Positions 21,805 to 50,536 of a DNA stretch of 64,000 nt are shown in pieces. The notes under the pieces are model-generated. The model made no database searches. It was given only the letters and a program-made list of their open reading frames with translations, and was not told the DNA's origin. Position numbers and translations under genes: made by a program. The first letter of the stretch is position 1; every line of letters begins with the position of its first letter. The stretch covers positions 195,339 through 259,338 of the IMG/VR virus record IMGVR_UViG_3300046660_000716; one strand, 5' to 3'.

Positions 21805-22101
21805 GTGGAACTCATCGACGAAGAATCGCAGTGCATCGAGATGGGCCTCGAGCCCCTCGAAGAGGCCGGCGGCCTGGTGTCGTGGCTGAAGCGCCTCGTG
21901 CGCGGACGCGACGACGCCCTGCCGGCCGAGCTGACGGCCGAGGTCGGCAAGATCAAGACCAAGGCCGAGAAGGACAAAGCGCTGGAGGAGGTCGACGGGT
22001 ACATCTCGAAGACCGCCGACAGCAAGGACAGCGCCGTACGCATGTACGCCGTGAAACTCAAGGGGGTGCGCGCCAAGATCGCCGCGCTCTCCGTCAAGTA
22101 A
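21805..22101 (+). CDS. Putative internal head protein, LEEAGG-SW paralog 1 (98 aa)
   Basis: AAGGAG RBS + GTG; MELIDEESQCIEMGLEPLEEAGGLVSWL; aligns with three other ORFs in the window. Confidence 0.8.
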   Translation: MELIDEESQCIEMGLEPLEEAGGLVSWLKRLVRGRDDALPAELTAEVGKIKTKAEKDKALEEVDGYISKTADSKDSAVRMYAVKLKGVRAKIAALSVK

Positions 22102-22110
22102 GGAGCTAGC

Positions 22111-22647
22111 ATGGACCACGCAGCAATCAACGAAGCCGCGGAATGCATCGGCCTGGGCATCGATCCGGACAACGAAATGCTGGACGAGATCGACGCACTG
22201 GACGAGGCCGGCGGAATCGTATCCTGGCTGGCGCGCGCCTACACGGGCAAGGACAAGGACCTGCCCGCCGAGATCGAGAAGGAGCTGGAGAGCATCAAGA
22301 CGAAGGAAGCCAAGGAGAAGATGCTGGCGGACATCGACGACTTCATCAAGGAGGCCGAGGCGTCCGCCGCCACGAACGCGATGGACAAGCGGGCTCCCAA
22401 CGACCTCGGCAAGGGCTTCGCCATGCCCGGCAGCGAGAAGTACAAGGCTCGTATGGCCTGGATGCGCAAGAACGCGCACACCAACGCGCTGGGCGTCGGG
22501 CACGGCCAGTACGGCCACCACCTCGCGGCGGGCGCGGTCGGCAACATCGTCAAGCGCATCAATGCCCTCGACGGAACGATCGACAAGTACATCGCCGAGC
22601 TGAAGAAGGTCCGCGCCAAGGTGGCGGCCCACAAGGTGGAGGGCTAA
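22111..22647 (+). CDS. Putative internal head protein, LEEAGG-SW paralog 2
   Basis: AAGGAG RBS; acidic leader ending ALDEAGGIVSWL; shared IKTK..K...L..ID.FI and YI..L..VRAKV motifs. Confidence 0.85.
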   Translation: MDHAAINEAAECIGLGIDPDNEMLDEIDALDEAGGIVSWLARAYTGKDKDLPAEIEKELESIKTKEAKEKMLADIDDFIKEAEASAATNAMDKRAPNDLGKGFAMPGSEKYKARMAWMRKNAHTNALGVGHGQYGHHLAAGAVGNIVKRINALDGTIDKYIAELKKVRAKVAAHKVEG

Positions 22648-22650
22648 CCC

Positions 22651-23535
22651 GTGAACATGACCGGCATCCCAGTAATCGGCGCTCTCATCGAGCGCCTCCG
22701 TCGCCGCTCTGACCACGAGAGCGTCAAAGCCGCAATGGCTTCGCGCGGCGACGTCACCCGCGTCGAGGGCTACGCCAAGATGTCCGAGTGCCTGGACCGC
22801 CTCAGCATGCTCGACGCCGGCTCCGGCTCGCTCGGCAAGCCGCTGACCGTCGCCAAGCGCGTGCGCGCCGTGCTGATCAAGCAGAAGCCGGCGTTCACCC
22901 AGGCGTTCAACCCGTCCGGCAGCGAGGCGACCCGCCTCATCTACGCCAACGCGGTGGCCGGCCTGTGGCACGTCACCTCGCTGCTGTGCGCCGAGGGCGT
23001 GACCTTCATGAAGGGCGGCGACGGCACCTACGGCCCGATCGTGAACCGCGGCGCGGTGGACGGCATGGCCGGCTCCGTGGTGGTCACCCGCCTGGAGAAG
23101 TTCGCAGACGCGGCCGAGAAGTACGGCTTCGACCAGGTCGTCACGGAGACGGCCCAGATGGTCGAGAACGAGACCATGCACGAGGCGATCCCGTTCATCG
23201 TCGGCGCGGGCCTGGCCGTGACCGGCCTCGCCGCGATGCTGCTGGTCGCGCGCGACCTGGCCGAGAAGTTCTACTCGCTCCGCGGCACGTTCTCGCGCTG
23301 GCTCGAGGTCCAGGCCCGCTTCCTGGACATGAACGCAGCGACGCTCAACCGCGACGCGTCCCGCAACAAGCAGAGCGAGTACGCCGAGAAGCTGCGCGCC
23401 CTGGCGGACCGCATCAAGGTGGACGATGCGGACACCGAGAAGGACGCGAATGCGGCCATTCGCCAGGACGACAAGGAACTCGCGGCGGCCCAGACCGGCG
23501 CCGCGCCGAGCTCCGCCGGATCCCGGCTGCTCTAA
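22651..23535 (+). CDS. Virion structural protein with a hydrophobic segment
   Basis: 294 aa; internal TMHE|AIPFIVGAGLAVTGLAAMLLV; same operon as the head-protein paralogs. Confidence 0.65.
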   Translation: MNMTGIPVIGALIERLRRRSDHESVKAAMASRGDVTRVEGYAKMSECLDRLSMLDAGSGSLGKPLTVAKRVRAVLIKQKPAFTQAFNPSGSEATRLIYANAVAGLWHVTSLLCAEGVTFMKGGDGTYGPIVNRGAVDGMAGSVVVTRLEKFADAAEKYGFDQVVTETAQMVENETMHEAIPFIVGAGLAVTGLAAMLLVARDLAEKFYSLRGTFSRWLEVQARFLDMNAATLNRDASRNKQSEYAEKLRALADRIKVDDADTEKDANAAIRQDDKELAAAQTGAAPSSAGSRLL

Positions 23536-23561
23536 ACATGCGCGGACCATGATTCCCTACT

Positions 23562-23573
23562 AACAGGGGGATA
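23562..23573 (+). promoter_or_regulatory. Putative late promoter AACAgggggaTA
   Basis: Intergenic motif match, 115 nt upstream of the 327-aa gene. Confidence 0.7.
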
Positions 23574-23688
23574 GCGGGTCTGCGCATTCAACGGAGTCGG
23601 GCGCAGGTCGGCCCCGCGTCCGTCATCCGTCGCTAGCACACACAACTCCCATTTTTTTCACCTCCCAAGTTCGAACTAAGGAGCATCC

Positions 23689-24672
23689 ATGATTCTCGAA
23701 AATTACAACCCGGCCGCCATCGCCAGCGAAGAGCTGGTCGAGTCCGCAGACTTCGCGGGCGACACCGGCGAGTTCGCAGAGCTGACCGTCGCCGGTCTGA
23801 GCGAAATGCACAACCTGACCATCGCTCTGGCTCGCTTCGAGCACAAAGCGCTGACCGAAGGCACCGACGAATCGAAAACCTTGATCGAAGCCGCCGTCGG
23901 CGAGTTCTTCGCCAAGGCAGCCGAGACCGTCAAGAAGTGGTGGGCATCGTTCATCGCTTGGCTGGGCTCCATGTGGACCCGCATGAAGGACGCCTTCGTC
24001 AAGCGCGAAGAGTGGCTGGGCCGCAACAAGTCGGCAATCAGCGGCGCGACCGCCGAGCAGCTGAAGGACATCAAAGCCTCGATCGGCTCGGAAGTCCTGA
24101 ACACCAACTTCGCCGATGTCGCCTCGAAGGCCATCAACGAAGCCAAGGCAGTCATCGCTGCAGCCGGCAAGACCACCGCCGCCGAAGGCAAGTCCTTCAA
24201 AGAGCGCGCCCAGGAAGCCATCACCAAGCACCTGGCCAAGCGCGATGCGAAGAACTCGATCGGCAAGAACGTCCACGACAGCCTGATCGGCGAGTCGAAG
24301 GAAGTCGAAGTCAACTCCGGCCTGGTCGGTAAGCTGATCTCGACCGCAGAAGCCACCTTCAAGGCAGTCGGCCAAATCGGCGGCGCCAAGATGGTTGCCG
24401 ACGCAGCCGTGAAAGAAGCCGAAGGTCTGGCCCACGTCACCGGCGGCGACAAAGCTGACATCAACGCACGCATCAGCGCGCTGCGCGACGTCGGCCACCT
24501 GGTCCAGGCGACCATCTCGGCCCACGCTTCGGCCATCAGCACCGCCAACGGCCAGGTCATGCCTGTGCTGGTGCGCATCGCTGGCGCCGCTGGCAAGAAG
24601 GAAAAGGAGCCTAAAGCCGCTCCTGCAGCAGCGACCAACGAAAGCGGCTCGCTGCTGGACGCTTACCTGTAA
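23689..24672 (+). CDS. Abundant internal head protein-like (acidic propeptide + amphipathic helix)
   Basis: Strong AAGGAG RBS; acidic leader with LVE, LTE and LIE sites followed by FFAKAAETVKKWWASFIAWLGSMWTRMK, like phiKZ-type internal head proteins; GAA/AAA/GCT-rich codons suggest high expression. Confidence 0.7.
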   Translation: MILENYNPAAIASEELVESADFAGDTGEFAELTVAGLSEMHNLTIALARFEHKALTEGTDESKTLIEAAVGEFFAKAAETVKKWWASFIAWLGSMWTRMKDAFVKREEWLGRNKSAISGATAEQLKDIKASIGSEVLNTNFADVASKAINEAKAVIAAAGKTTAAEGKSFKERAQEAITKHLAKRDAKNSIGKNVHDSLIGESKEVEVNSGLVGKLISTAEATFKAVGQIGGAKMVADAAVKEAEGLAHVTGGDKADINARISALRDVGHLVQATISAHASAISTANGQVMPVLVRIAGAAGKKEKEPKAAPAAATNESGSLLDAYL

Positions 24673-24700
24673 TACGCCCCCGGGCGTGAGCAGGCTGATT

Positions 24701-24726
24701 GCCCCTACCCCTCGCGGGGTAGGGGC
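24701..24726. terminator. Hairpin GCCCCTACCCC-TCGC-GGGGTAGGGGC
   Basis: Perfect 11-bp stem plus TTT between convergent genes. Confidence 0.75.
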
Positions 24727-24730
24727 TTTC

Positions 24731-26044
24731 TCACTGCGCCCGCGCCGCGGAGGGCACGAGGATGCAGTTCACGTCGACGGCGCATGTCTCCTGCGCGCCC
24801 GGGGCCTTGGTCAGCACGGCCTCGAAGGCGGTGATCCTCCAGCGCCCCTCCATCTCGGCGCTGGTGGGCTTGTCCGTCACCAGGGTCCACTGCAGGACGG
24901 GCGTGAACGCGTCCAGGTCGCACGAGCTGAAGAACACAGAGGCCGGCGAGTACTGCTCCCGGGCCTCGATCCGCATCCGCTCCACGGTCAGCGGGTTGTC
25001 GTACGTCTGCCAGGCCACGCGCTCCTTCTTGACGTCGCTGACGCCGGACTGGTCGTCCTGCACCAGGCTCTTGCAGTTGCTGCCCGATCGCTCGTCGGCC
25101 GTGGACCGCACCAGCTTCACCCGCTCGCCCTCCACCTCGCGGCGGGCGGGGCCGTCCACTGCAGCGGCGATCCGGCGGGACGTGCGGAGACGGAACGTGC
25201 GGGTGTCTGGGTCGTAGGCGGACCCGCTGCCGCTCGACGCCGGGCCGGCCTCCTCCGGCCCGAGGTACTCGATCGTCACAGCCGTCGCTTCGTCCTTGTC
25301 GACAACCGTGGACTTGGTTGAGCTGAGGATGTAGCCCTCGTTCACGTCCAGGAAGATCGACAGGCGCCCCGCGTACAGGCCGTAGACGCGGTCCACGTGC
25401 CGCACGGCCGCCACGTAGCTCAGCGGCGGCACGAACACCGTCTCGTAGACCTTCGGGTTGTCCGACGGGGCCATGAAGAAGCGGTACGGGATGTCGGTCG
25501 GCGCGTTGTCGGCGGTCAGGGACGCCACGATGCTGGTCATCGCCGCGTCGTGGTAGGCGCCGTTGTTGACCTTCTTGTTGATCTCCAGAGCGTTCACCGG
25601 GGCGAGCTCCATCTTGAACAGCACGCTCGGCGTGTTCATCGCCGAGTCGGAGGCCTGGCCGTCCGGCACGTGCGGAGGGGCGCCGTCGCAGACCATGATC
25701 TGGAACGGGGCGTCGCGCAGGTACGTCTCGCCGGTGTCGGTCTCCACCGTGCCGGACGTGTCGTCGGCGGAGGCCCCCGACGCCGTGAAGCGACCCAGCG
25801 TGATGTACACCTTGGCCGAGCGCCACGCCGCCTGGATCTTCAGGGCGTTCACCACCGAGACGGCGACCGTCAGCCGGTAGTACGGCATGACGTGCTCGTC
25901 GTACTTCTTCACGATCCTGAGCTCCGTCATGAAGTCCGACAGGTCGATGGTGTCTTCCTCCTCGCCGTCCTTCGGGATCAGCTTGACCACGGCGCCGTAG
26001 CGCGTATGCTCGAAGTCGCTGATGTCGGATGAAATGGTGGTCAT
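24731..26044 (-). CDS. Possible baseplate hub/tail protein
   Basis: 437 aa, beta-rich; layout (IDLSDFMTELRIVKKYD, YGLYAGRLSIFLD, GRWRITAFEAVL) is reminiscent of gp27/gpD-like hubs. Confidence 0.45.
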   Translation of the reverse strand: MTTISSDISDFEHTRYGAVVKLIPKDGEEEDTIDLSDFMTELRIVKKYDEHVMPYYRLTVAVSVVNALKIQAAWRSAKVYITLGRFTASGASADDTSGTVETDTGETYLRDAPFQIMVCDGAPPHVPDGQASDSAMNTPSVLFKMELAPVNALEINKKVNNGAYHDAAMTSIVASLTADNAPTDIPYRFFMAPSDNPKVYETVFVPPLSYVAAVRHVDRVYGLYAGRLSIFLDVNEGYILSSTKSTVVDKDEATAVTIEYLGPEEAGPASSGSGSAYDPDTRTFRLRTSRRIAAAVDGPARREVEGERVKLVRSTADERSGSNCKSLVQDDQSGVSDVKKERVAWQTYDNPLTVERMRIEAREQYSPASVFFSSCDLDAFTPVLQWTLVTDKPTSAEMEGRWRITAFEAVLTKAPGAQETCAVDVNCILVPSAARAQ

Positions 26045-27317: not shown

Positions 27318-27704
27318 TTACTTGTCTTCGATCTTGATCGCATTGACGCGCGCTTCGAGTTTGTCCATCGCTTTGATGTACTCTTCGGTCGTGCCGTTGT
27401 TCTTCTTGATCAGGCGCCCGACGATCCCCAGCACGACCCACATCGGTCCGATCAAGAAGGCGGCCAGCTGACCCCCCGTCAGGGTCTTCGCTTGCTTCCT
27501 GAACTTGGCGATGTCGGCCAAAATACGATCCTTGTCCTTCTCGGTGCGGATCTTCTTGATCTCTGCCTCGATGTCGTCCGGCAGGCTGGTGTCCGAGCCG
27601 CTCAACCAGCGCGTCAGCCAGGATACCAGGCCGCCGGCCTCTTCCAGGTTTTCCATGTCGATCGCGTCGGCGCCCTCGGTGAAGACGATGTTAGTATCCA
27701 GCAT
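27318..27704 (-). CDS. Putative internal head protein, LEEAGG-SW paralog 3
   Basis: NLEEAGGLVSWL, IRTEKDKDRILADIAKF, EEYIKAMDKLEARV; central hydrophobic hairpin. Confidence 0.85.
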   Translation of the reverse strand: MLDTNIVFTEGADAIDMENLEEAGGLVSWLTRWLSGSDTSLPDDIEAEIKKIRTEKDKDRILADIAKFRKQAKTLTGGQLAAFLIGPMWVVLGIVGRLIKKNNGTTEEYIKAMDKLEARVNAIKIEDK

Positions 27705-27726
27705 TGCGTGCTCCTGATTGTCGTGT

Positions 27727-27738
27727 TACGTGGTTGTT
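27727..27738 (-). promoter_or_regulatory. Putative late promoter AACAaccacgTA
   Basis: Intergenic motif match upstream of paralog 3. Confidence 0.65.
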
Positions 27739-27746
27739 GGAATGGG

Positions 27747-28580
27747 TCAGGTGAAGAACACGTCGTCGCCCACGACGACGGCCTCCCCCAGGGCGCCCTT
27801 TGGAAGGATGGCCTTCCAGAACACGCCGCCGAAGGCATTGTTGAGCACGTGGATCAGGATGGCGATCACGTAGGTCGCGCGACCGGCCTCGTCCTTGCTT
27901 TCGCCGGACAGCACGCCCTTCTGGTAGCCCCACTTCTGGAGCGCGCCAAGGAACTGGTGAAACACCGCCAGCGTGCCGCGGATGGCGACCGCGACGCCCA
28001 GCTTGATCCCGGCCTTCAGCATCATGCTGACGTAAGAGGTGAACTCGTACGTGTTGATGAGCATGGTCAAGGAAGCCAAACCCTCGCCCTGCTTCAGCGC
28101 CTGGCGGCGGGCGCTCTCCTCGACGATCGGGGCCACGAAGACCGAAGTGACCATCATGGCTGCCTGCGGACCGAGAAACACGGAGAACAGTGTCATGGCG
28201 AACGTGTTGACGATCAGGATCAGGAGGAACAGCATCAGGCCAGCGCTGAACTCGTTGCCGTCCGAGATGCCGTTGTACATGGTCACGAAGGTCTTCACAA
28301 AGCTCTCGTGCATGATGCCGGCCACCTGCCCGATGTCCGCCTTCGGATCTGAAAGCAGGGGCGCGACGGTCGTCGCCAGGCCGGAGGCAGCCGCGCGGCA
28401 CTTGGTCAGCATCTCCTCCACGTGAAAGCCGGCCGCCTTGAGCGCAGCTTTGGCTTCCTCCATGCAGGAGTTCATGCTAGCCTCGGCCGCCTCCACGCCG
28501 GCCTTCGAGCTCACCATCTCCATAAGGAGGCCCACGTTGACGCCCTCGATCAGGGCGGCCTGTTCAGCGGTGATGATCAT
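27747..28580 (-). CDS. PrsW/CPBP-family intramembrane glutamic protease-like protein with a soluble N-terminal leader
   Basis: Several TM segments with APIVEESARR (EExxxR), NTYEFTSY, LAVFHQF and IAILIHVLNN (HxxxN). Confidence 0.7.
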   Translation of the reverse strand: MIITAEQAALIEGVNVGLLMEMVSSKAGVEAAEASMNSCMEEAKAALKAAGFHVEEMLTKCRAAASGLATTVAPLLSDPKADIGQVAGIMHESFVKTFVTMYNGISDGNEFSAGLMLFLLILIVNTFAMTLFSVFLGPQAAMMVTSVFVAPIVEESARRQALKQGEGLASLTMLINTYEFTSYVSMMLKAGIKLGVAVAIRGTLAVFHQFLGALQKWGYQKGVLSGESKDEAGRATYVIAILIHVLNNAFGGVFWKAILPKGALGEAVVVGDDVFFT

Positions 28581-28583
28581 GGG

Positions 28584-30026
28584 CTAGTACTCCGCTTCCG
28601 AGGTGGCGGCCTTGTCGAGCAGGTCCCGGACCTTGGCCTTCAGCTGGTCGACGTTCTGGTTGTACTCGTCGTTGTCCCACTTCTTCGACAGCACCTTGTC
28701 GCGCAGGGCCGCCAGCTCGCGGATGGCCTCGCCGGTGCGCACGCTCATCTCCTTCGCGGCGTCGTCGCTGCCGGTGGCGCGCTGGAACCACGCCGCGCTG
28801 TCGTGGACGAACGCCTGGAACTTCGACGGACTGTGGCGGATCTGGACGAGACGCTCCAGCAAGCGCACGATCTTGGTGATGACCAGGCGCTGCTGCTCGG
28901 GGGTGGAGATGTCCTTGGCCTCGGCGGCCAGCTCCTTGATCTCCTTCTCCATGTTGCCGGTCGCCAGGTTCTTGACGAAGGAACCCAGACCCTCGTGCAG
29001 GTACTCCTTCGACTCGCTGTAGGCGATGCGGAGCGCGTCGGGGTTCACCTCGCGGGCCTCGACATCGATGCCCTTGTCCGACACGGCCCGCAGGCAGGTC
29101 ATCATGAACACGGACACGTCCTGGTAGCCTGCTACGGTGCCGCGCACAAGCGCGTTGTGGAACTGCACCACGTCGTTGCCCGCACCGCGCAGCTTGTCGA
29201 CGACGCTCTGCGGGTTGCTGAAGCGCTGGCGGTTGGACTTCAGGCGCGACTTGAGCTCCATGAACATGCCGGCGATCTTCTCGCCCGGCTGACCCTTCTG
29301 CAGCTCGTCCATGTCCTTGGTGATCATGGCGATCTTCAGCACGGCGGACTGGTAGGCTGCCGAGGTGATCTTCTGCTCGGCTGTCTGCCCCAGGTACCAG
29401 TACTCCTTGCCTTTCTCGTTCAGGGTGTCTGAGTCGTAGCCGCCCTTGTTCGCGGTGCGGTTCATGATCTCGCGCACGGTCTTCTGGAAACTGACGATGG
29501 GGTGGCCGAAGCTCATGAAGGCGGTCTCTGCCTTCCAGAGGGTCACGAACGCTTCCTCGTAGTCCTTGACCGCCGCACCCGCCATTGTGGCGCCGCACAT
29601 GACGTGCACGTCAAACGCGCGGTGGTCGGTCGGATGCACGAAGCCGGGCTTGCGCAGCAGCTGGCCGCACGTCATGCCAGGCTCCTCGGAGCGGTCCACT
29701 GCGGCCGCGCCCAGTCCGTCGGCGGCGCGGTGGAACATCGAGCGGTCCACACCCTGGGCCTCGGCCGCCGGGATCTTGGAGTTGTACTTGCCGCGCAGCA
29801 TGTCCCAGGCGCGGCGCAGGAAGGCCACGACCTTGCGGACGAACTCCTTCAGCCACTGGATGATGTGGTCGATGAGCTCGCCGATGGCGAACTCGTTCAG
29901 CACGGTGTTCTCGGTCAGGCGGCTGAAGAGGTCGTCGTACTCGCGGCGGGCGGACTCGCAGATGGCGTCGATGCCGGCCAGGATCTCGGAGTCGTTCTCG
30001 CTCAGCTGGGTGAGGGTCAGGATCAT
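28584..30026 (-). CDS. Putative internal head polyprotein
   Basis: Acidic leader (LTE, LNE) followed by an amphipathic helix IIQWLKEFVRKVVAFLRRAW; internal YLHE|GLGSFV starts a module resembling the LEEAGG-SW family. Confidence 0.65.
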   Translation of the reverse strand: MILTLTQLSENDSEILAGIDAICESARREYDDLFSRLTENTVLNEFAIGELIDHIIQWLKEFVRKVVAFLRRAWDMLRGKYNSKIPAAEAQGVDRSMFHRAADGLGAAAVDRSEEPGMTCGQLLRKPGFVHPTDHRAFDVHVMCGATMAGAAVKDYEEAFVTLWKAETAFMSFGHPIVSFQKTVREIMNRTANKGGYDSDTLNEKGKEYWYLGQTAEQKITSAAYQSAVLKIAMITKDMDELQKGQPGEKIAGMFMELKSRLKSNRQRFSNPQSVVDKLRGAGNDVVQFHNALVRGTVAGYQDVSVFMMTCLRAVSDKGIDVEAREVNPDALRIAYSESKEYLHEGLGSFVKNLATGNMEKEIKELAAEAKDISTPEQQRLVITKIVRLLERLVQIRHSPSKFQAFVHDSAAWFQRATGSDDAAKEMSVRTGEAIRELAALRDKVLSKKWDNDEYNQNVDQLKAKVRDLLDKAATSEAEY

Positions 30027-30050
30027 GTCGATCTTTCTTGTTGGTTTACG

Positions 30051-30611
30051 TTAGAGGCCGAGCGCGACCTCGTCGTCCGTGGCCTCCGCGATGGCGCGCT
30101 GCTTCACGCTGCCGATCTTGGTCACCAGGTAGTCATGCAGGCGGCCGGACGCCACGAGCTTGGCCCTGCGGCGCTTGCAGACGCCCTGCGGCGTGGCCAT
30201 GGCCGGCACGGTGAACGCGCGGCGCAGACCGGCGATGACGCACGCCTGCTCGACGAATTCGGAGCAGAAGCGAGCCTCGTCGGACTGGATCGGCATGCCC
30301 AGGGCGATGCCGATGGTGCCGCGGTAGGAGAAGCGGAAGCCGGACTTGGACATCTCCGTCACGAACTTGCGAGCCGAGGCGAGACCGGCCGGCTCGACTT
30401 CGACCTCATAGAGCTCGAACTCGGTCCAGGATGGCCACTCTTCCTTGGTCTCGCGGACGAAGCCGTCCTTGCCCATGTTGAACGAGTAGCACTCGGCCAG
30501 GCCGGGGTCGAACGAGATCGAGGCGTGGTTGAATCGCTCGCCGGTGATGGCGGTGATGATGTGCGAGACGGGCTTCTTCGTGTTGGTGGCGAGGAGGTAG
30601 ATGCTCGCCAT
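30051..30611 (-). CDS. Permuted papain-like (NlpC/P60, YiiX/YebB-type) amidase
   Basis: His-before-Cys order: FNHASISFD...YSF...FCSEFVEQ. Confidence 0.8.
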   Translation of the reverse strand: MASIYLLATNTKKPVSHIITAITGERFNHASISFDPGLAECYSFNMGKDGFVRETKEEWPSWTEFELYEVEVEPAGLASARKFVTEMSKSGFRFSYRGTIGIALGMPIQSDEARFCSEFVEQACVIAGLRRAFTVPAMATPQGVCKRRRAKLVASGRLHDYLVTKIGSVKQRAIAEATDDEVALGL

Positions 30612-30614
30612 GGC

Positions 30615-31199
30615 TCACTCCACCTTCATCGCTGCCACGTCGTCGCGCACAAGCTGCAGGGCGGCCACGTACTTGTCGAGCGAGCCCGAGTAGCGGTTGA
30701 CCGTCTTCAGCGTGATGGCGATGATGCCCAGCGAGATGGCGCCGATCGTCAGGCCCTGGACGGTGCCGTTCACGATCGTGCCGAACTGGGACGCCTTGTT
30801 GGCGGCGTCGGCCAGCTTCTGCTTGGTCTTGCGGAAGAAGATGTCCTTGACGACGGGCGCATGCATGCCGGAGGCGGACACCGCTCCGGCCGCCGCGCCG
30901 AGGATCGCTCCGGCCGCGCCGCCGACGGTGCCGATCCCCAGCGAGTTGAGCGCGTCGCCGAGCAGGCCGTTCTTCTCGGCCATGCGCGCCTCATCGAGGA
31001 AGTCGTCAATCTCGTCCAGCGCGCGGCGCTTGTCGTCCTTGGTCTTGATCCGCGCCATCTGCTCGCGGAGCTCGTTCACCAGCGCGTTGTCGACGTTGCT
31101 GAAGGCGCGCTTGATCCAGGAGATCACGCCGCCGGCCTCTTCGAGCGGCACCAGGCCCATCTCGATGCAGGCGTCCTCTTCCAGGATTTCGTTTGCCAT
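30615..31199 (-). CDS. Putative internal head protein, LEEAGG-SW paralog 4
   Basis: EEDACIEMGLVPLEEAGGVISWI, IKTKDDKRRALDEIDDFL, DKYVAALQLVRDDV; Gly-zipper insert. Confidence 0.85.
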   Translation of the reverse strand: MANEILEEDACIEMGLVPLEEAGGVISWIKRAFSNVDNALVNELREQMARIKTKDDKRRALDEIDDFLDEARMAEKNGLLGDALNSLGIGTVGGAAGAILGAAAGAVSASGMHAPVVKDIFFRKTKQKLADAANKASQFGTIVNGTVQGLTIGAISLGIIAITLKTVNRYSGSLDKYVAALQLVRDDVAAMKVE

Positions 31200-31209
31200 G
31201 TGCTGCTCC

Positions 31210-31914
31210 TTATTCGGTCGCGTTGGCGAGGTTGTCGTCCGCCTGCATGGCGGCGGCCAGGATCCCGCGGTACGCCTGCATCGCGGTGCTGATGAGGCTA
31301 AGGTACGTGCGCTCCACGTCGCTGTAAACGCTCGGTACGGCAGCGCGCAGGTTGGACTTCTCGACGAAGCCGGTCGTCTGATCGACTATCGCCTCGATCT
31401 TCTCCCATCCGTCGTGCGCCTTGTCCAGCACGTTCCCCAGCCGATGCCTGTAGCTGGCGCGCCCCGTCGGCGTGACGATCGTGGTCGGGATCGGGCGCGC
31501 GAAGCGCTCGATCGACAGCGTGATCTCCGTGCGGGCGCGTGCGAGGCCCGCCACGTCGCGATTCACCAGCTGCGAGGTGGCCTGGACGGCCCATTTCTGA
31601 ATTGCCTCGAACACGCGCACCAGGTTGGTGACGTTGTCCGACATCACGACCGGATCCGGCATGCGTGCTTCGCCGGGGGCGGTGGCATCCTTCTCGGCCG
31701 CGGCTGCCTCATCGGGCGCAGCGCGCTTGCGGCGCATGATCATGTCGACGATGCGCTTCATGAAGTTGACGATGCTCCGCCAGACGGCGTGGATCATGTC
31801 GCCGGCCGAGCTGGCTTGGGCTTCGACCAGCGCGACGTTGAAGTCGTCGAGCAGGGAGGACAGCGTGTCCTGCTCGTACAGGCCGAGCTCCATGTAGGTT
31901 TCTTGGATCAGCAT
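31210..31914 (-). CDS. Putative internal head protein (acidic leader + amphipathic helix)
   Basis: MELGL near the N-terminus; ALVE|AQ followed by MIHAVWRSIVNFMKRIVDMI. Confidence 0.65.
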   Translation of the reverse strand: MLIQETYMELGLYEQDTLSSLLDDFNVALVEAQASSAGDMIHAVWRSIVNFMKRIVDMIMRRKRAAPDEAAAAEKDATAPGEARMPDPVVMSDNVTNLVRVFEAIQKWAVQATSQLVNRDVAGLARARTEITLSIERFARPIPTTIVTPTGRASYRHRLGNVLDKAHDGWEKIEAIVDQTTGFVEKSNLRAAVPSVYSDVERTYLSLISTAMQAYRGILAAAMQADDNLANATE

Positions 31915-31936
31915 TTGGCGCTTTCTTGATTTGTGA

Positions 31937-32395
31937 TTAGAGCCCGAGCTCGATCTCCGCGGCCTCGTAGACCTGGATCTGGGCCGGGTAGACGGCGACG
32001 AGCTTGCCGCCCTTCTGCGACTCGGTCTTGGCCGGCGCGTCGCCGCGCGGCTTGGTCTCCGGGTCGGTGATGGATGTCTCAGGGCGGCGATCGATCTGCA
32101 CGTCCATGTTGCCGCCGGAGAGGGTCTGCTGCGTGACCTGCGTGGCGCCGTCGCCGCCGGCGTCCGTCACGAGCAGGGTGATGTGGCTGGCCTCGTGCAC
32201 GACCTTCGCCGTGGCGTCGGCATCGGCGTTCTTGGCGTGCTTGCCGAAGATGACCCACGCCTTCGCGTACAGGATGCGCGCCCAGTTCTGGCCGTAGCGC
32301 TTCTTGAACTCCGGCTTGTTCTTGAGGATCCATTCCTCAGCTCCCGGTGCGTCCGGCGCGGCCTCCAGCAACTGCTGGATGTTAGCGGCGATCAT
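31937..32395 (-). CDS. Hypothetical head-associated protein
   Basis: LLE|A leader; EEWILKNKPEFKKRYGQNWARILYAKAW module recalled from myophage hypotheticals; C-terminal YE|AAEIELGL. Confidence 0.7.
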   Translation of the reverse strand: MIAANIQQLLEAAPDAPGAEEWILKNKPEFKKRYGQNWARILYAKAWVIFGKHAKNADADATAKVVHEASHITLLVTDAGGDGATQVTQQTLSGGNMDVQIDRRPETSITDPETKPRGDAPAKTESQKGGKLVAVYPAQIQVYEAAEIELGL

Positions 32396-32676
32396 GACGT
32401 CGAGCTGATGAACTCGAGCTTCTCGGCCGGGATGGCCTCCGGCTCGGGGTAGAACTTCGTCGCGGCGCGGTGCGTGTAGGCGGCGTAGCCGACCTTCTCA
32501 CCCTTCTTGTCCTCGAAGTACATGACGGTGCAGTCCAGTTTGGCCTGCGGCACCTTGAGGCGGCCGGACTCCTCGCGGGTCAGGCTGCGCCGCTTGTACT
32601 TGTCCCACCAGGCCGCTTCGGTGAGGGATTCCAGGTCGGCCTCGATGGCTGACTCGACCAGCAGTTCGTTGTCCAT
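32392..32676 (-). CDS. Small hypothetical head-associated protein
   Basis: Acidic leader ending SLTE|AAWW; GYAAYTHRAATKFY...IPAEKLEFISST. Confidence 0.7.
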   Translation of the reverse strand: MDNELLVESAIEADLESLTEAAWWDKYKRRSLTREESGRLKVPQAKLDCTVMYFEDKKGEKVGYAAYTHRAATKFYPEPEAIPAEKLEFISSTS

Positions 32677-36122: not shown

Positions 36123-37937
36123 ATGAACGACAAGCTCAGCATTCGCCCGGCAGCGGGCAGCCACCTCGAAGCCGCTACCACCCTGGTAGCGCAGCACAAT
36201 GCAAACAAGGCTGCGGACGAGGTGGCAGCGGCGCCGCTGCCGAAGATCACCAAGCCTGCGTTCGAGGGTCCACGCAGCAACGTGGTGGCCGGCGACGCGC
36301 ACGCGGTGGCGATCCGCTCGGCGCTGAACACGATCGCTCGCATCGTGGGTCGCACCCTCGGCCCGCATGGCTCGAACACCCTGGTCCGCTCCGAGAGCGG
36401 CTCGCACTTCGCGACCAAGGATGGCTACACCGTCTTGCAACGCACCACGTTCGTGCAGGAGATCGCCACGATGGTCCTGGACCACGTGCGCTCGGTCAGC
36501 CGCACCATGGTGCGCAAGGTTGGCGACGGCTCCACCAGCGCGGTCGTCATGGCGGACTCCCTGTACGACACCATCATCGACACCTCGGTGCTGCGCGACT
36601 TTCCGCCCGGCGCCGTCCAGGCCGTGCTGTCGGCCATCGCCGACGTCCTGGTGGAGAAGATCCGCGAGCGCGGCACCAGCGCCATCTGCGCGGCCGATCT
36701 GCTGACCGTGGCGACCATCTCCGCCAACAACGATCCGGCCATCGGCGCCCTGATCGCCAACGCCTACGAGGCGGGCGGCGAGGAAGCCAATGTATTCGCC
36801 GAGATCGGCACGGGCGACCGCACCGTCGTGCGCAAGGAGCCGGGCTACCGCGTCATGCGCGGCATGGTCCACGAGGCGTTCGCCAACGAGGTCAGCGCCG
36901 AGGGCAGCCGCGCCACGCGCTGCCGCCTGCACGACGTCCGCGTCCTGATCTACGACGGCACCGTGGACCAGTCCACGTTCAACACGCAGATCGCCCCGGT
37001 CATGAACGGCTGCATCGAGCTCGGCGTCGCGTTCGCGCTGGTCGCGCGCGACTACGGCGACGACGTGGTGAAGATCGTCGCCGAGTTCATGCGCAAGAGC
37101 CCCGGCATCAAGCTGGTCATGCTCGACCACGCCGGCGCCACCCGCCGCGGCATGGCTCGCATGGGCGACCTCGCGGCCGTGCTGGGCACGACCGTCGTCA
37201 TGCCGGGCACCAAGATCGACGAGGACCGCCTGGGCTTCGCGGCCGAGGTGCGCTCCGGCCCGAGCGACACGGTGTTCGTGCTGGCGGGCCAAGGCACGGA
37301 CGTGGCCGAGCGCGTGGCTCAGCTGCGCGAGCAGGCCGACCGCATGGACATGAACAACCACGACGAGACCCAGGCCGACGAGATCGCAGAGCTGCGCGCC
37401 CGCATCCGCGCCATGCTGGGAAGCGAGGTCACGATCTCGGTCGGCGGCGCCACCGAGCAGGAGAAGCAGGCCCTGCACTACCTGATCGAAGACTCGATCC
37501 TGGCCGTGCGCGCCGCGAACCGCTCCGGTGTGGTCGAGGGCCTGGGCATGACGGCGCAGCGCGTGCTGGCGGACAGCTCGTCCGACGTGGCCGTCGAGAG
37601 CCTGAAGATCGCCGCGACCCGCACCTCGCTGGGAATGGGCCGCCTATCGGGCCTGGTAGCACACATGATGGTGGCCGTCCAGGCAGCATACCTCGCGGCC
37701 TCCTCCAAGGTGCTGGAGAACGCGCACCTGGATGCCGGCGAAATCATCGGCACCTGCCTGCGCGACGGGAAGTGCTTCGACGTGATGACCGGCGAGTACA
37801 CGGTCGGCGCCACCGTTCTCGCCCCCACGGACACCGACGTGGAGGTCCTGCGCGGCGCCATGTCCATCGTGAGCCTGCTCGTCAGCAGCAACCAGACCGT
37901 CCTGATCCGTCCATCGGCCGGCCTGGGACTCGACTAA
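36123..37937 (+). CDS. groEL: Phage-encoded GroEL-like chaperonin
   Basis: TLGPHG, TKDGYTV, VGDGSTS, ISVGGATEQE, GVVEGLG, GEYTV...PTDTDVEVLRGAMSIVSLL; no GroES nearby. Confidence 0.92.
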   Translation: MNDKLSIRPAAGSHLEAATTLVAQHNANKAADEVAAAPLPKITKPAFEGPRSNVVAGDAHAVAIRSALNTIARIVGRTLGPHGSNTLVRSESGSHFATKDGYTVLQRTTFVQEIATMVLDHVRSVSRTMVRKVGDGSTSAVVMADSLYDTIIDTSVLRDFPPGAVQAVLSAIADVLVEKIRERGTSAICAADLLTVATISANNDPAIGALIANAYEAGGEEANVFAEIGTGDRTVVRKEPGYRVMRGMVHEAFANEVSAEGSRATRCRLHDVRVLIYDGTVDQSTFNTQIAPVMNGCIELGVAFALVARDYGDDVVKIVAEFMRKSPGIKLVMLDHAGATRRGMARMGDLAAVLGTTVVMPGTKIDEDRLGFAAEVRSGPSDTVFVLAGQGTDVAERVAQLREQADRMDMNNHDETQADEIAELRARIRAMLGSEVTISVGGATEQEKQALHYLIEDSILAVRAANRSGVVEGLGMTAQRVLADSSSDVAVESLKIAATRTSLGMGRLSGLVAHMMVAVQAAYLAASSKVLENAHLDAGEIIGTCLRDGKCFDVMTGEYTVGATVLAPTDTDVEVLRGAMSIVSLLVSSNQTVLIRPSAGLGLD

Positions 37938-46943: not shown

Positions 46944-46954
46944 TCTGAAACGAA

Positions 46955-46979: not shown

Positions 46980-46997
46980 GCAACCAAGGAGCCGACA

Positions 46998-47597: not shown

Positions 47598-47607
47598 CAG
47601 TAAAGAC

Positions 47608-47650
47608 GCCCATGCCCGCGGAGGGCATGGGCACTTCGTCTTTTTTTTTT
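47608..47650 (+). terminator. Terminator GCCCATGCCC-GCGGA-GGGCATGGGC followed by a long T run
   Basis: 10-bp perfect stem and T run between convergent operons. Confidence 0.8.
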
Positions 47651-48917
47651 ACAGCTCGCGGCAGTACTTCGACATGTCGATGCGCGTGCGCTTCAGGCTG
47701 GAGTCGTGGAACGCCTTCAGGCTCGCGTTCATCAGGGTTGTCCCGATGCGGCCGGCGATCAGGCCGATGTTGGTCACCCCCATGCGGTGGTGCAGGGTGC
47801 CCGCGCAGCGGCTGCAGATGCCCCCGCTCGTGTCCCCGCAGTACATCGGGGAGCGGAACTGGAGCGTCTTGCCCTTCAGCCCGGCAAGATCGTCAGGCAT
47901 GATCTCGCGCAGCTTCCCGCCCTCCAGGTAGAACCGGAAGAGGTACTCGCGGGGGGAGTCCACCGTCACGCGCAGGTAGCGCGCGCTGCGGCAGTCGCTC
48001 TTCGCGTCCTCGTTGAGGCGCAGGCCCTGGAACGCGGCGTTCAGCTGCTTGGCGATGTAGCCGCCCTGGGCGGTCATCATCGAGCGACCGTAGGACGCCT
48101 GCACGATCAGGTCGGCGTAGGCCGGCATCTCGTCGACCGGAATGCCGTCTTCGAGCGACGCTGTGGAGACGGTGATCTGCGACGGATCGTCCGACTTGCG
48201 CATCGCGCCGCGCATGAGCGCCGTGTTCTTGTAGTTGTTGCCCACGGAGCCGCGCGCGCCGGACGCGAAGATGTCGAAGCCGGGGTCCTTGCCGTCGAGC
48301 TGGCCCTTGGCCGATGCCACGAGCTCCTTCTCCACGGCCCCCAGCTCGCCCAGGTCGCCCTCGCGGAGCCTCTTGCCGCGCTCGCTCGCCAGGATCTCCT
48401 TCTTCAGGCGCTTCGTCACCGGGTCGATGCGGATGGTGTCGATCGTCATGGACGGAGCAATGAAGCTGGTCGGGGCGTAGCCGAGCCACTGCATGTAGTC
48501 GATCAGGTACGCCTGGTCCTCGAACGTGATCTTGCCGGCGAGCCGCATGTCGATGGCGCGCTGCTGGATCTCGCCGACCGTCTTGTCGTCCCACGGCCTG
48601 TCGTAGTAGGGGAACGCCTCGCGCAGCGCCCTGGAGCGCGAGAAGACGAGGTTGTTGGCCACGTAGCGGCCCACGGTCGTGCTGCGGATCGAACCCCAGT
48701 TCGGTGCCCAGCGCACGTCCCACTCGCCCTCGGCGCGCTCGCCCGGCGGCGGCCGGCGGAACTCGTCCGGCACGTCCACGGTGGACTCGTGCGGGTACCG
48801 CGGGGTGGTCTTCTTGGTCGTCGCCAGCCAGTCGCGGAGCAGGTCCAGCGAGTAGGCCGAGGGCGGCGTGCGCAGCAGCTCCATGGTGGCGATGCCGGGA
48901 ATCGTCTGTCGGTCCAT
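47649..48917 (-). CDS. Split multisubunit RNA polymerase, beta-prime C-terminal subunit (probably virion RNAP)
   Basis: SGARGS, bridge helix TAQGGYIAKQLNAAFQ, SDC, Zn ligands ICSRC, trigger loop NIGL..GRIG..LMN..LKAFH; 422 aa from ATG 48917. Confidence 0.88.
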   Translation of the reverse strand: MDRQTIPGIATMELLRTPPSAYSLDLLRDWLATTKKTTPRYPHESTVDVPDEFRRPPPGERAEGEWDVRWAPNWGSIRSTTVGRYVANNLVFSRSRALREAFPYYDRPWDDKTVGEIQQRAIDMRLAGKITFEDQAYLIDYMQWLGYAPTSFIAPSMTIDTIRIDPVTKRLKKEILASERGKRLREGDLGELGAVEKELVASAKGQLDGKDPGFDIFASGARGSVGNNYKNTALMRGAMRKSDDPSQITVSTASLEDGIPVDEMPAYADLIVQASYGRSMMTAQGGYIAKQLNAAFQGLRLNEDAKSDCRSARYLRVTVDSPREYLFRFYLEGGKLREIMPDDLAGLKGKTLQFRSPMYCGDTSGGICSRCAGTLHHRMGVTNIGLIAGRIGTTLMNASLKAFHDSSLKRTRIDMSKYCREL

Positions 48918-50119
48918 CACGCGCTCCCTTCGATGTCGAAGCCAGCGGTGCGCATGGCGTTCATGAGTTCCTCCTGGCCGCTGGCGGCGGATCCGTCGCT
49001 GAGGTAGCGCAGCGTGGCCGTCAGCCATCCGGCGGAGCCCACGTGGCGGCACGTCAGGCTGCCGAAGGTCACGGCCTCGTCCGGGAGGTCGCTGTCGAAC
49101 AGCGCGCCCTTGGCGAGCTCCGGGTTGGCCTGGCCCTCGCCGCCCTCGGGGCGGACCTCGGCCTTGACCCACGCCTCGGCGATCGCGTCGCGCAGCGACC
49201 ACTCGCGGCCGTTCACTCCGTCGTGGTCGCCCTGGGTGATGCGGACGGTCAACGGCGCGCCGTCCTTCCAGCCCCCGGCGCGCAGTGCGTCCATCAGGTG
49301 CCGGAGCATAGGAATCAGCTGGTCCTGGCCGCAGATGCGCGTCTTCCCGGCCAGAGCGCGGTCGCCCACGCCGACGTCCGCCTTTCCGTTCCCGTGGCCG
49401 TGCGAGCCCTTCTCCTGAATTGCGAAGAAGATCTCGGGATCATCGGCGTGCTCCATCATGGTATTCTCTCCCATTGCGAATCCCGATGCGGCGCCGATTG
49501 CGCCCATCGTGGTACCCATCACCGCGCCCATCGCAGCGGCGCCGACCAGGCCGCCGCCGAAGGCGCCGACGCCCGCACCGGCTATTCCGTAACCCACGCC
49601 GAACGCCAGGCCCTTGGTCTTGGCGGCCTTGATGCGCTGCGCCATCGGGATCTTCTTGCGCGGGACTGAGAGCACCACCGGCTTGGGCCTCTGGATCTCG
49701 TAGGGGCTCACGTAATCCTTCAGGTGGTCCTCTTTGAAGCTCTCGAGAAAAGCCTGGTAGGAATCCTTGCAGCTGAGCCACGTGAAGCGAGCCGGCCCGA
49801 AGTAACCGTAGTTCGGCTCGCCGGGCTGCGGGTCGTCGTGGATGAATTCCCACACCTGGCCCGTTTTCTCCGACAGGAACCAGTCGTTGCCGCCGCCATC
49901 GCTGTAGATCATGTGCAGGCGCTGTTCGCGCTCGGTGACGAGCCACTCCGGCTTCAGCCAGTCGCCGAGGCCCCCGGACGCCTCCAATCCGCCGAGGTGC
50001 GGGTTCCGCTTCAGGTACGCGATCGCCTTGTCGGCTGTGGGATACTTCTCCACAAGCGCCCTCGCGCGAGCCTCATCGTTGTGGTAGTACCCGTCTCCGA
50101 AGAGCAGTTCCTTGGACAT
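48917..50119 (-). CDS. SUKH/SMI1-KNR4-like domain + glycine-zipper segment + unknown C-terminal domain
   Basis: IYSDGGGNDWFLSEKTGQVWEFIHDD...KDSYQAFLESF matches the SUKH core; GLAFGVGYGIAGAGVGAFGGGLVGAAAMG hydrophobic zipper; start set at MSKELL. Confidence 0.65.
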   Translation of the reverse strand: MSKELLFGDGYYHNDEARARALVEKYPTADKAIAYLKRNPHLGGLEASGGLGDWLKPEWLVTEREQRLHMIYSDGGGNDWFLSEKTGQVWEFIHDDPQPGEPNYGYFGPARFTWLSCKDSYQAFLESFKEDHLKDYVSPYEIQRPKPVVLSVPRKKIPMAQRIKAAKTKGLAFGVGYGIAGAGVGAFGGGLVGAAAMGAVMGTTMGAIGAASGFAMGENTMMEHADDPEIFFAIQEKGSHGHGNGKADVGVGDRALAGKTRICGQDQLIPMLRHLMDALRAGGWKDGAPLTVRITQGDHDGVNGREWSLRDAIAEAWVKAEVRPEGGEGQANPELAKGALFDSDLPDEAVTFGSLTCRHVGSAGWLTATLRYLSDGSAASGQEELMNAMRTAGFDIEGSA

Positions 50120-50146
50120 TCTGAATCCTTTCAATTACACGGAAGC

Positions 50147-50170
50147 GGGGAAGGGCTCACGCCCTTCCCC
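50147..50170 (-). terminator. Hairpin GGGGAAGGGC-TCAC-GCCCTTCCCC
   Basis: Perfect 10-bp stem between co-oriented genes; similar to the hairpins at 9057 and 26078. Confidence 0.55.
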
Positions 50171-50176
50171 TCTCCT

Positions 50177-50536
50177 TCACAGACCGAGATCGATCTCGGC
50201 CTCGGTCTGGTCGTCTTCCTCGCTGAGCTTGCGCTTCTTGAGGCTAGCATCGGTCGGCTTCTCACTGCCGCCGAAGGCGGTCGACGGAAACGGCGCGCTC
50301 AGCACCTGCGGCTTGGCGCCACCCTGCACGCCGGCCGCCACTGGAGCGATGCCGGAAATGCTGGCGTTCTCGGCCATGGCTTTCATCTGGCGGTCCTCTT
50401 CCCTACAGACCGGGCACCCGAGGACTCCCAGGGCGCCGCACTTGGCCCGCGCGCCGTCCGGCCGGGGCCGGAGGTGGCCGTGCCAGTCCGCCGGATTGTC
50501 AAAGTCGAGGCCAAGGTTGAGACTCTGCGGACCCAT
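50177..50536 (-). CDS. Hypothetical protein with possible Zn-binding motif and C-terminal TE|AEIDLGL tag
   Basis: HGH...KCG...GCPVC; alternative start at 50386. Confidence 0.6.
   Translation of the reverse strand: MGPQSLNLGLDFDNPADWHGHLRPRPDGARAKCGALGVLGCPVCREEDRQMKAMAENASISGIAPVAAGVQGGAKPQVLSAPFPSTAFGGSEKPTDASLKKRKLSEEDDQTEAEIDLGL

Follow-up and report, generated by a model that had tools for sequence, protein, structure and literature searches.

An uncultured giant phage carries the same short peptide (approximately I-E-L-G-L), next to a probable protease cut site, on either end of unrelated proteins, which is best explained, with moderate confidence, as a removable sorting peptide that loads these proteins into the forming head; in this view it would be a two-ended version of the capsid-targeting leader of phage T4. 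The analysis was based on a 64,000-nucleotide window (positions 195,339 to 259,338 of IMG/VR record IMGVR_UViG_3300046660_000716), together with other sequence from the same contig and from relatives. A preliminary description had listed seven copies of the motif, each separated from the protein body by an x-x-E↓A site (the arrow marks the putative cut), and had proposed a portable, position-independent packaging tag that is subsequently trimmed off. Its observation was confirmed, as all seven copies were found in the genes it named. Its interpretation was supported in part.

A short terminal motif on otherwise unrelated proteins

To determine whether the motif is more than a chance resemblance, we located each copy and examined its distribution across the window. 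The N-terminal cores are IEMGL (21835-21849, +), IGLGI (22147-22161, +), IEMGL (31152-31166, -) and MELGL (31879-31893, -), while the cores at the exact C-terminus are VALGL (30054-30068, -), IELGL (31940-31954, -) and IDLGL (50180-50194, -), such that three unrelated proteins end exactly in LGL. A Glu followed by Ala lies between tag and body in every case, and P3 is hydrophobic in six of the seven, the exception being Q-T-E↓A in the protein encoded at 50177. The pattern [IVM]x[LM]G[LI] occurs nine times in 66 proteins (20,251 aa); seven of these are terminal and the other two lie in hydrophobic segments of a single paralogue family. In a motif-agnostic test, three proteins sharing any C-terminal tripeptide was reached in only 117 of 20,000 random-position controls. 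In addition, a core pattern trained only on the leaders of the paralogue family and tested on 203 other proteins was 5.6 times denser at termini (Fisher p = 1.6e-4). The tag codons differ at synonymous sites and the flanks are unrelated, so this is not a DNA repeat and the conservation is at the peptide level. In contrast, the bare Φ-x-E↓small site (Φ, hydrophobic) is common (0.58% per residue) and means little by itself.

Three of the four N-terminal copies belong to paralogues (32-47% identity), hereafter the AGG..SW family, so there are five independent families rather than seven. The three paralogues are a 98-aa protein (21805-22101) with a 20-aa leader ending PLEE↓AGG (21805-21864, +), a 178-aa protein (22111-22647) with a 32-aa leader ending ALDE↓AGG (22111-22206, +) and a 194-aa protein (30615-31199) with a 21-aa leader ending PLEE↓AGG (31137-31199, -). 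In an AlphaFold2 (AF2) model of the 194-aa protein, the leader has low confidence and residues 14-24 are coil. A fourth paralogue of 128 aa (27318-27704) has a degenerate 22-aa leader (27639-27704, -), in which the core is lost (AIDMEN in its place) but the junction, NLEE↓AGG, is kept. The remaining N-terminal copy is the 31-aa leader (31822-31914, -; ends ALVE↓AQ) of an unrelated 234-aa protein (31210-31914). An ESM Atlas search gave a lead for this protein to the phiKZ internal head proteins, but no match to the Pfam phiKZ_IP model (PF12699) was found even at E <= 10.

The first C-terminal copy, ATDDEVALGL after AIAE↓ (30054-30083, -), is on a 186-aa protein (30051-30611) that is predicted to be a YiiX-like permuted papain-fold peptidase. 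Its AF2 model has a mean pLDDT of 89.8, Foldseek matched 3KW0 and 2IF6 (YiiX) with probability 1.0 and TM of about 0.6, and a His preceding a Cys (H29 and C116) is invariant in 31 sequences, although there was no Pfam hit. The second, AAEIELGL after QVYE↓ (31940-31963, -), is on a 152-aa protein (31937-32395) that also has an N-terminal leader, MIAANIQQLLE↓ (32363-32395, -), whose junction E↓A(A)PDAPGAEEW is conserved behind different leaders in homologues. The third, AEIDLGL (50180-50200, -), is on a 119-aa protein (50177-50536) encoded by the last gene of a virion-protein operon.

Further putative leaders and tails that lack the exact core were identified in the same region. A 277-aa protein (27747-28580) has the tail AVVVGDDVFFT after ALGE↓ (27750-27782, -), and its orthologues in two relatives, here L005 and L011, end AC-LIELSL-S and GLDDELLLQHITL, respectively. 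A 94-aa protein (32392-32676) has a 20-aa leader ending SLTE↓AAWWDKY (32617-32676, -), a junction that is conserved in relatives. A MIL-type leader (MILTLTQ..., ending AICE↓S; 29955-30026, -) is present on a 480-aa protein (28584-30026), whose C-terminal part is distantly related to the AGG..SW family, and a MILENY-type leader ending ELVE↓S (23689-23742, +) is present on a 327-aa protein (23689-24672).

Conservation in relatives and a candidate protease

Relatives extend this finding. About 100 divergent members of the AGG..SW family share a junction L-x-E↓A-G-G, and of 104 family representatives, 68 have Φ-x-E-[A/S/T]-G-G, with Leu at P3 in 62 and Ala at P1' in 56. The corresponding columns hold Leu in 82 of 91 and Glu in 87 of 91 aligned members, although GG is nearly as conserved as L-x-E. 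About 20 members carry the leader E-x-C-Φ-E-L-(G/D)-L-x-P-L-x-E↓ (class A). Three different leader classes join at the same site, and in the natural fusions P0027 and P0029 the leader is an internal linker. However, many members with class B or C leaders lack the core, as does the paralogue at 27318, so the core is not required for every member.

The tag is portable, as the same leader or tail sits on at least six unrelated families in the window and in relatives. The class A leader was found on an unrelated 166-aa family, a 198-aa protein and ferritin-like proteins (L091, L011), while C-terminal tails were found on the YiiX-like peptidase in nine phages, on the 277-aa family, and on the proteins at 31937 and 50177. 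It also behaves as an add-on, since remote homologues of the peptidase on large, probably cellular contigs lack the tail. A Φ-x-E site plus a tail is present in nine homologues of the peptidase, but the tails themselves vary widely (ILLDL, DLGLF, DIDFFM, EIYDWRHT), and within-genome co-variation of tag type is not clean. In orthologues of the 50177 protein at 55% identity, the terminal LGL is invariant, yet the junction lacks a hydrophobic P3 in all three orthologues, so that tail may not be cut.

We next looked for a candidate protease. A gene elsewhere on the same contig (L114:1330-2148) encodes a T4 gp21-family protease (Peptidase_S77, PF03420; 32.7 bits against a cutoff of 27) that also matches PHROG 207 and 3014, head maturation protease. 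The capsid protein is also encoded on this contig. The phiR1-37 capsid protein is experimentally cleaved at L-Q-E↓S87, where its mature N-terminus is Ser87 after M-L-Q-E, and this phage has V-F-R-E↓S in the aligned position. The tags lie next to sites that match the likely specificity of this protease, which is T4-like L-x-E, not the phiKZ S/A/G-x-E rule that the preliminary description had also cited. The protease itself ends FLE↓ADIRSEFRGALLSL, a 14-aa tail ending ALLSL that is similar to the cargo tails, and its homologues keep Φ-x-L-E plus a 13-16-aa tail. Four of 99 proteins from this genome end Φ-x-L-(G/S)-L, although this pattern was widened after seeing the data.

Proposed interpretation as removable sorting peptides

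We propose that a cargo protein is made with a 17-32-residue N-terminal leader or a 7-11-residue C-terminal tail, whose core is an acidic-then-hydrophobic peptide, E-x-(C)-Φ-E-L-(G/D)-L. During prohead assembly, this peptide would bind a shared site on the core, scaffold or inner shell, probably the same site that the tail of the maturation protease uses. The gp21-family serine protease would then cut after (L/I/V/F)-x-E, between tag and body, such that the mature protein stays inside and the peptide is lost. The sequence data establish the motif, its terminal bias, portability and conservation, the conserved L-x-E junction, the S77 protease gene, Φ-x-E↓S at the mapped maturation site of the capsid protein and the similar tail on the protease, whereas binding of the tag, packaging, cleavage and the location of the cargo in the head are inferred. 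Neighbouring genes match AR9 virion proteins, including 47649-48920, which matches the AR9 virion RNAP beta subunit. However, the tagged cluster lies among both tail and head genes (with tail tube and baseplate-wedge neighbours), so a head location rests on the protease-site argument, and neither the AGG..SW family nor the peptidase has a homologue in any cultured phage, while no virion proteome exists for this uncultured clade.

The closest precedent is the T4 capsid-targeting sequence (CTS) of IPI-III and Alt, a 10-20-aa N-terminal leader shared by otherwise unrelated internal head proteins, followed by an (L/I)-x-E site and removed by gp21 (PMC5694885). The core described here, Φ-E-L-G-L with a preceding Cys, is unrelated to the T4 leader, occurs also at the extreme C-terminus and internally in fusion proteins, and coexists with several leader classes. 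C-terminal packaging signals have been proposed for prohead proteases (PMC7411985), and in SPN3US gp245 this region is removed by self-cleavage (PMC7411985, PMC10052503). The C-terminal region of HK97 gp4 is reportedly also needed for entry of the protease into the prohead. In those systems the signal is described only for the protease itself, whereas here a similar tail is found on unrelated proteins. Head and ejection proteins of phiKZ and SPN3US likewise form paralogue families processed by a gp21-like protease after x-x-E (PMC10052503, PMC5694885), but their propeptides are mostly 100-250 aa, N-terminal only and cut at A/S/G-x-E, with no shared motif reported. An N-terminal stretch of about 30 aa of P1 DarB is sufficient to send a reporter protein into the capsid (PMC9024508), but this concerns a single protein, without a C-terminal counterpart, shared motif or protease-site design.

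Family 1 encapsulin targeting peptides (consensus SDGSLGIGSLKRS; C-terminal, or N-terminal TVGSL on some cargo) are short Φ-x-Φ-G-x-Φ peptides on a flexible end that load unrelated cargo, including ferritin-like proteins, into an HK97-fold shell (PMC8346489), and tagged ferritin-like proteins are present in relatives of this phage. Tags at either terminus therefore have a precedent, contrary to the suggestion in the preliminary description that a bi-terminal tag might be undescribed. The resemblance in sequence is loose, as only the Φ-x-Φ-G-Φ skeleton is shared, with no GSL and no basic end. Encapsulin peptides are not cleaved off but stay attached and bind a pocket formed by the P-domain and N-helix of the shell protein, and there is no protease, and here the shell is a DNA-filled T4-like phage head.

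Alternative readings and implications

The strongest alternative, although unlikely, is that the tags are retained, either tethering cargo permanently to the inner shell, as encapsulin peptides do, or recruiting the protease as an exosite, with the nearby Glu-Ala being incidental, at least for the C-terminal tails. The similar encapsulin core, the non-hydrophobic P3 of the 50177 family and the frequency of Φ-x-E↓small by chance are consistent with this. However, a protease site next to the tag argues for removal: Φ-x-E with a hydrophobic P3 is kept just upstream of the tail in all nine phage-clade peptidase homologues and all four members of the 277-aa family despite divergence of the tails, the tail of the protease follows a conserved Φ-x-L-E, and the SPN3US protease is known to lose its C-terminal propeptide (PMC10052503).

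It is also improbable that the AGG..SW leaders are double-glycine or ubiquitin-like leaders cut after G-G, possibly by the cluster's own papain-like peptidase, for export or activation of small membrane-active peptides. GG is present in about 74-82% of members, a cysteine peptidase fold is predicted in the same cluster, and the 30615 protein gives weak glycine-zipper, bacteriocin-IIc and SseC-like hints and has a hydrophobic helix. Double-glycine leaders, however, need hydrophobic residues at -4, -7 and -12 and a C39 peptidase/ABC exporter partner, whereas position -4 here is the conserved Glu, and no C39 peptidase or ABC exporter was found among the annotated window genes. In addition, divergent members keep L-x-E but lose GG, the other tagged families share Φ-x-E and have no GG, and this reading does not explain the C-terminal tags.

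Similarly improbable is a recognition or folding signal for another partner, such as the membrane or the phage-encoded GroEL-like chaperonin, whose gene (36123-37937) lies within 5 kb of the cluster in the window and in relatives. The N-terminus of the T4 capsid protein is reported to direct proteins to GroEL (reference 29 in PMC10052503), but AR9 has the chaperonin and lacks the tagged cluster, and neither the protease-type junction nor the similar tail on the maturation protease would be explained. Finally, a by-product of paralogy and gene fission or fusion, in which the C-terminal tags are functionless remnants of leaders from once-fused downstream genes, could draw on the three paralogous copies, the natural fusions and the fact that the 31937 protein is a shortened form of a 245-255-aa protein, but is very unlikely given that a stop codon directly after the tail is kept in nine peptidase homologues and three 50177 orthologues, that LGL is invariant while neighbouring residues change, that the tagged families are unrelated outside the tag, and that terminal enrichment is seen in non-family proteins.

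A more far-reaching possibility, which remains tentative, is that giant phages of this clade use a general, encapsulin-like cargo-loading code, in which a short Φ-E-L-G-L-type peptide at either terminus or internally would dock into one defined site of the assembling head, the same site that the protease tail uses. Any protein acquiring the peptide and an L-x-E linker would then become packaged, injected cargo (ferritin-like, HD-domain, SNF2 helicase, peptidase), which would link the phage CTS and encapsulin targeting peptides mechanistically, and perhaps evolutionarily.

These findings bear on the open question of how giant phages choose the dozens of proteins that they pack into the head and inject with the DNA, given that the propeptides of the studied giant phages are long, N-terminal and share no reported motif. 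A short, sequence-defined tag that works at either end, with a defined cut site and an identified protease, would make this selection rule directly testable, would explain how new cargo (ferritin-like, HD-domain and helicase proteins in relatives) is acquired in a modular way, and would offer a compact handle for packaging foreign proteins into large capsids, as the T4 CTS and encapsulin peptides already do. It also gives a concrete point of comparison between phage heads and encapsulins.

Conservation of the motif at the peptide level

The 64-kb window is the last part of a 259-kb IMG/VR contig and has 66% GC. Genes were called by codon-position GC and, where a name is needed, proteins are designated here by the lowest coordinate of their gene in the window. 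The phage is a distant relative of the phiR1-37, AR9 and PBS1 jumbo phages, with 26-29% identity on an 848-aa protein, and its gene order matches that of AR9 across a virion-protein block. The observation made in the preliminary description, that one short motif recurs at the ends of seven proteins, was confirmed, and all seven copies are in the positions originally assigned to them. The pattern [IVM]x[LM]G[LI] occurs nine times in 66 proteins, where four copies lie within the first 17 residues and three are the last five residues of a protein, while the other two lie in hydrophobic segments of a paralogue family.

To assess this recurrence without presupposing the motif, we first applied a pairwise test for at least 4 of 5 identical C-terminal residues, which was not significant because it is too strict. 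This was replaced by a test of how often three proteins share any C-terminal tripeptide, which was reached in 117 of 20,000 controls. The three C-tagged proteins are unrelated outside a 7-residue tail. A DNA repeat, promoter or terminator overlapping the gene ends was rejected, as the tag codons differ at synonymous sites (Gly GGC/GGG/GGT, Leu CTC/CTG, stops TAA/TGA), the flanks are unrelated and the motif always lies in the coding sense, so this is conservation of a peptide and not of a DNA element. Stop-codon readthrough joining 50177 to the RNAP gene was also rejected, given a second in-frame stop and a conserved hairpin terminator.

The count of otherwise unrelated proteins required correction. 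Proteins 21805, 22111 and 30615 are paralogues, together with 27318, that share the leader, a mature N-terminus A-G-G-Φ-Φ-S-W-Φ-K-R and a C-terminal coil, and therefore count as one family (AGG..SW), of which 27318 has lost the G-L core. In addition, the bare Φ-x-E↓small site (the arrow marks a putative cleavage site throughout) is too frequent to carry weight as evidence by itself.

Leader classes, portability and genomic context

A profile search for the AGG..SW family found 104 representatives at the 50% identity level. Of these, 68 have a strict Φ-x-E-[A/S/T]-G-G junction, with Leu at P3 in 62 and Ala at P1' in 56, and in the aligned family the columns hold L in 82 of 91 and E in 87 of 91 sequences. 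Upstream of this fixed junction the leaders fall into three classes: class A, ...E-x-C-Φ-E-L-(G/D)-L-x-P-L-x-E↓, which is the tag originally described (about 20 representatives); class B, of about 50 residues, beginning MI(I/L)L-x-E and containing AFVEAA...YT-x-EQL-x-EMV; and class C, MILTEDNFFLE. The AF2 model of 30615 is all-helical, where the leader is the least confident part and residues 14-24 (EMGLVPLEEAGG) are coil. Neither this family nor the tagged peptidase 30051 has a homologue in any GenBank phage, and the family profile finds nothing in 58 kb of AR9. A phiKZ_IP lead from the protein atlas was not confirmed.

Genes of the tagged cluster are fused in different combinations in relatives (proteins P0003, P0027 and P0029), comprising 31937-like with 32392-like, the 251-aa protein with an AGG..SW member, and the peptidase with an AGG..SW member, a pattern that looks polyprotein-like. 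In P0027 and P0029 the leader is an internal linker between two domains. The C-terminal third of the 480-aa protein encoded at 28584-30026 (-) is weakly related to the C-terminal coil of the AGG..SW family (E = 1e-5 with the family profile), and in the related locus L002 a 335-aa protein joins an AGG..SW N-terminus to this C-terminus.

Homologues of the 186-aa protein 30051 in nine related phages all keep a hydrophobic-x-E site followed by a 7-12-residue acidic-then-hydrophobic tail that ends at the stop codon in, for example, ILLDL, DLGLF, ILLNL, ELDLF or DIDFFM. Its remote homologues on large contigs, some of 0.8-1.6 Mb and probably cellular, end without any such tail. The predicted YiiX-like permuted papain fold of this protein supports its initial designation as a papain-like amidase. 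Orthologues of 50177 at 55% identity keep an invariant LGL before the stop codon while neighbouring residues change, and homologues of 31937 have different N-leaders in front of a fixed E↓A(A)PDAPGAEEW junction. In the related locus L091, a different family (166-172 aa, junction PL-x-E↓MA) carries ILIELGLDLPLSE↓ or TLLELGLDLPLRE↓ on two members and an MVIINEY leader on another, while a 198-aa protein there starts ...EDMLDLGLLEFGV. The ferritin-like proteins of L011 (another related locus) and L091 start MLDTLIALDLPFQE↓D and ...EGLDFELMAECTLLAE↓A.

The 277-aa family, represented in the window by 27747-28580 (-), has C-terminal tails after Φ-x-E in four phages, one of which reads AC-LIELSL-S at the stop codon. 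The window protein gives a sub-threshold match to the PrsW family of intramembrane proteases (20.1 bits against a cutoff of 23.5), and its orthologue in related locus L005 shows the same faint hit. When the core regex was trained only on the AGG..SW leaders, 203 unrelated proteins showed 10 terminal and 14 interior hits, a 5.6-fold enrichment (p = 1.6e-4). Within-genome co-variation of G-type and D-type tags was suggestive in places (ILLQL and LLLQHITL in L011; DIDFFM and FDLFDF in related locus L094), but not clean.

A second recurrent N-terminal signature, M-I-(I/L)-(L/T)-x-E (MILENY, MILTEDNFFLE, MILVNE, MIILNE and others), was found at window genes 23689, 27747 and 28584, at the gene just upstream of the capsid gene and at many genes in related loci L002-L006, L091-L094 and L097, and marks proteins of the cargo cluster as well as that upstream gene. 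Four of 99 proteins examined in this genome start M-I-[IL], all four in head or cargo contexts, and this may be a separate leader class.

The main tagged cluster (27318-32676) occupies a variable slot, and AR9 lacks this cluster. In the syntenic slot of relatives (L002-L006, L011, L091, L092 and L094) there are extra genes encoding ferritin-like (PF00210) and HD-domain (PF01966) proteins and, in L094, a 792-aa SNF2 helicase starting MSSFDLFDFSD, none of which is present in the window phage. A GroEL-like chaperonin encoded next to the cluster (36123-37937, +) ends ...RPSAGLGLD, but relatives end ...GGLD, so this ending looks like a family feature and not a tag. Protein 50177 is encoded by the last gene of an operon whose two upstream genes correspond, by matching PHROG profile lengths, to the AR9 virion proteins g260 and g259. 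A GC-rich hairpin (GGGGAAGGGC...GCCCTTCCCC; 50135-50176, -) lies directly after its stop codon, is conserved in orthologous loci (L097, L098) and is probably an intrinsic terminator closing the virion-protein operon. The next genes include a homologue of the AR9 virion RNAP beta subunit, at 41.5% identity.

Elsewhere in the window, the 1347-aa ORF at 51352-55395 (-) is over-extended through an antisense shadow: the real minus-strand gene starts at ATG 54507 (1051 aa, virion structural PHROG), and a separate plus-strand gene occupies 54604-55389. A 2535-aa protein (1442-9049, +) combines a tape-measure-like region with a lysozyme/endolysin-like domain (residues about 2180-2410) and resembles giant-phage tail-associated lysins. 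A run of genes at 57803-62830 (-) matches PHROGs annotated as tellurite resistance and membrane protein, or of unknown function (a TerD-like neighbourhood), which is unusual cargo for a phage structural region.

An S77-family protease gene and its C-terminal tail

An alignment of capsid proteins from cultured relatives was used to recover 21.5 kb of the same contig around its capsid gene (locus L114; capsid gene at 9980-11596). This region encodes a 272-aa protein (L114:1330-2148) that passes the Pfam threshold for Peptidase_S77, the T4 gp21 family, and matches PHROG head maturation protease. The phiR1-37 record states that the mature N-terminus of the capsid protein is Ser87, which follows M-L-Q-E, and the aligned site reads ILQE↓S in PBS1/AR9, ILQE↓A in BpSp, ILME↓S in the Staphylococcus phages and VFRE↓S in this phage. 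The protease of this lineage therefore very probably cuts after Φ-x-E, as T4 gp21 does, which matches the tag/body junctions and is not the S/A/G-x-E rule of phiKZ that was also cited in the preliminary description. The PBS1 capsid protein is predicted at 58.9 kDa but runs at about 50 kDa (PMC5646251), which is consistent with such a cut. The gene just upstream of the capsid gene (L114:9254-9889) starts MILTGYVPLNE↓A, and its acidic counterparts in phiR1-37, PBS1, LPJP1 and SA1 also begin with a short hydrophobic leader and a Φ-x-E site; leaders of this acidic protein in phiR1-37, AR9 or PBS1 read MSALFLSTLLQE↓ and ...NFFLKE↓.

PBS1 gene 4, although annotated as "capsid maturation protease", gave only a marginal M48 match. 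The S77 homologue in AR9-type phages appears to be a split gene upstream of the capsid gene, and in AR9 (L109) and several metagenomic relatives (L121, L122, L127, L131 and L137-L139) it appears split into two or three ORFs, while the MarsHill record annotates an intron with a homing endonuclease.

The protease of the window phage itself ends KVFLE↓ADIRSEFRGALLSL. Its homologues in eight other loci, including AR9, keep a Φ-x-L-E-type site (Asp in place of Glu in AR9) followed by a 13-16-residue tail of the form E-Φ-D-x-F-L-x-x-Φ at the stop codon. Among the 99 proteins examined from this genome, a set that leaves out about 175 kb of the contig, four end in Φ-x-L-(G/S)-L: the protease and the three C-tagged proteins. 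The binomial probability is about 8e-8, but the pattern was widened after seeing the data.

Candidate cleavable prohead-sorting peptides

The proposal that a portable tag loads diverse cargo into the prohead and is then trimmed off was partly supported. The most likely reading, which we consider somewhat more probable than not, is that these are cleavable prohead-sorting peptides, a variant of the T4 CTS that would also work from the C-terminus and that resembles encapsulin targeting peptides, which are known at either terminus (PMC8346489). Collectively, the sequences establish the motif, its terminal bias, its presence on unrelated families, its conservation and the existence of an S77 protease gene, whereas binding, cleavage and packaging into the head are inferred from sequence alone and by analogy, without virion proteome data. 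This reading is weakened by the position of the cluster among both tail and head genes, by the 50177 junction, which lacks a hydrophobic P3, by the absence of the core from many family members, and by the GG of the main family, which is almost as conserved as L-x-E. The alternatives are each unlikely: retained anchors rank first among them, followed by double-glycine-type processing and then recognition by another partner such as the chaperonin. Relics of gene fission or fusion are the least likely of these, while a DNA-level explanation and stop-codon readthrough were excluded.

In the literature surveyed, giant-phage propeptides are described as N-terminal, mostly long and without a shared motif, and the only C-terminal propeptide described is that of the protease. 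The proposed signal is not a new category, but would differ from the T4 CTS in also acting from the C-terminus. [quoted passage not shown] The C-terminal design of a tag plus a cut site therefore has a precedent in the protease itself, and in this phage it appears to have been copied onto cargo.
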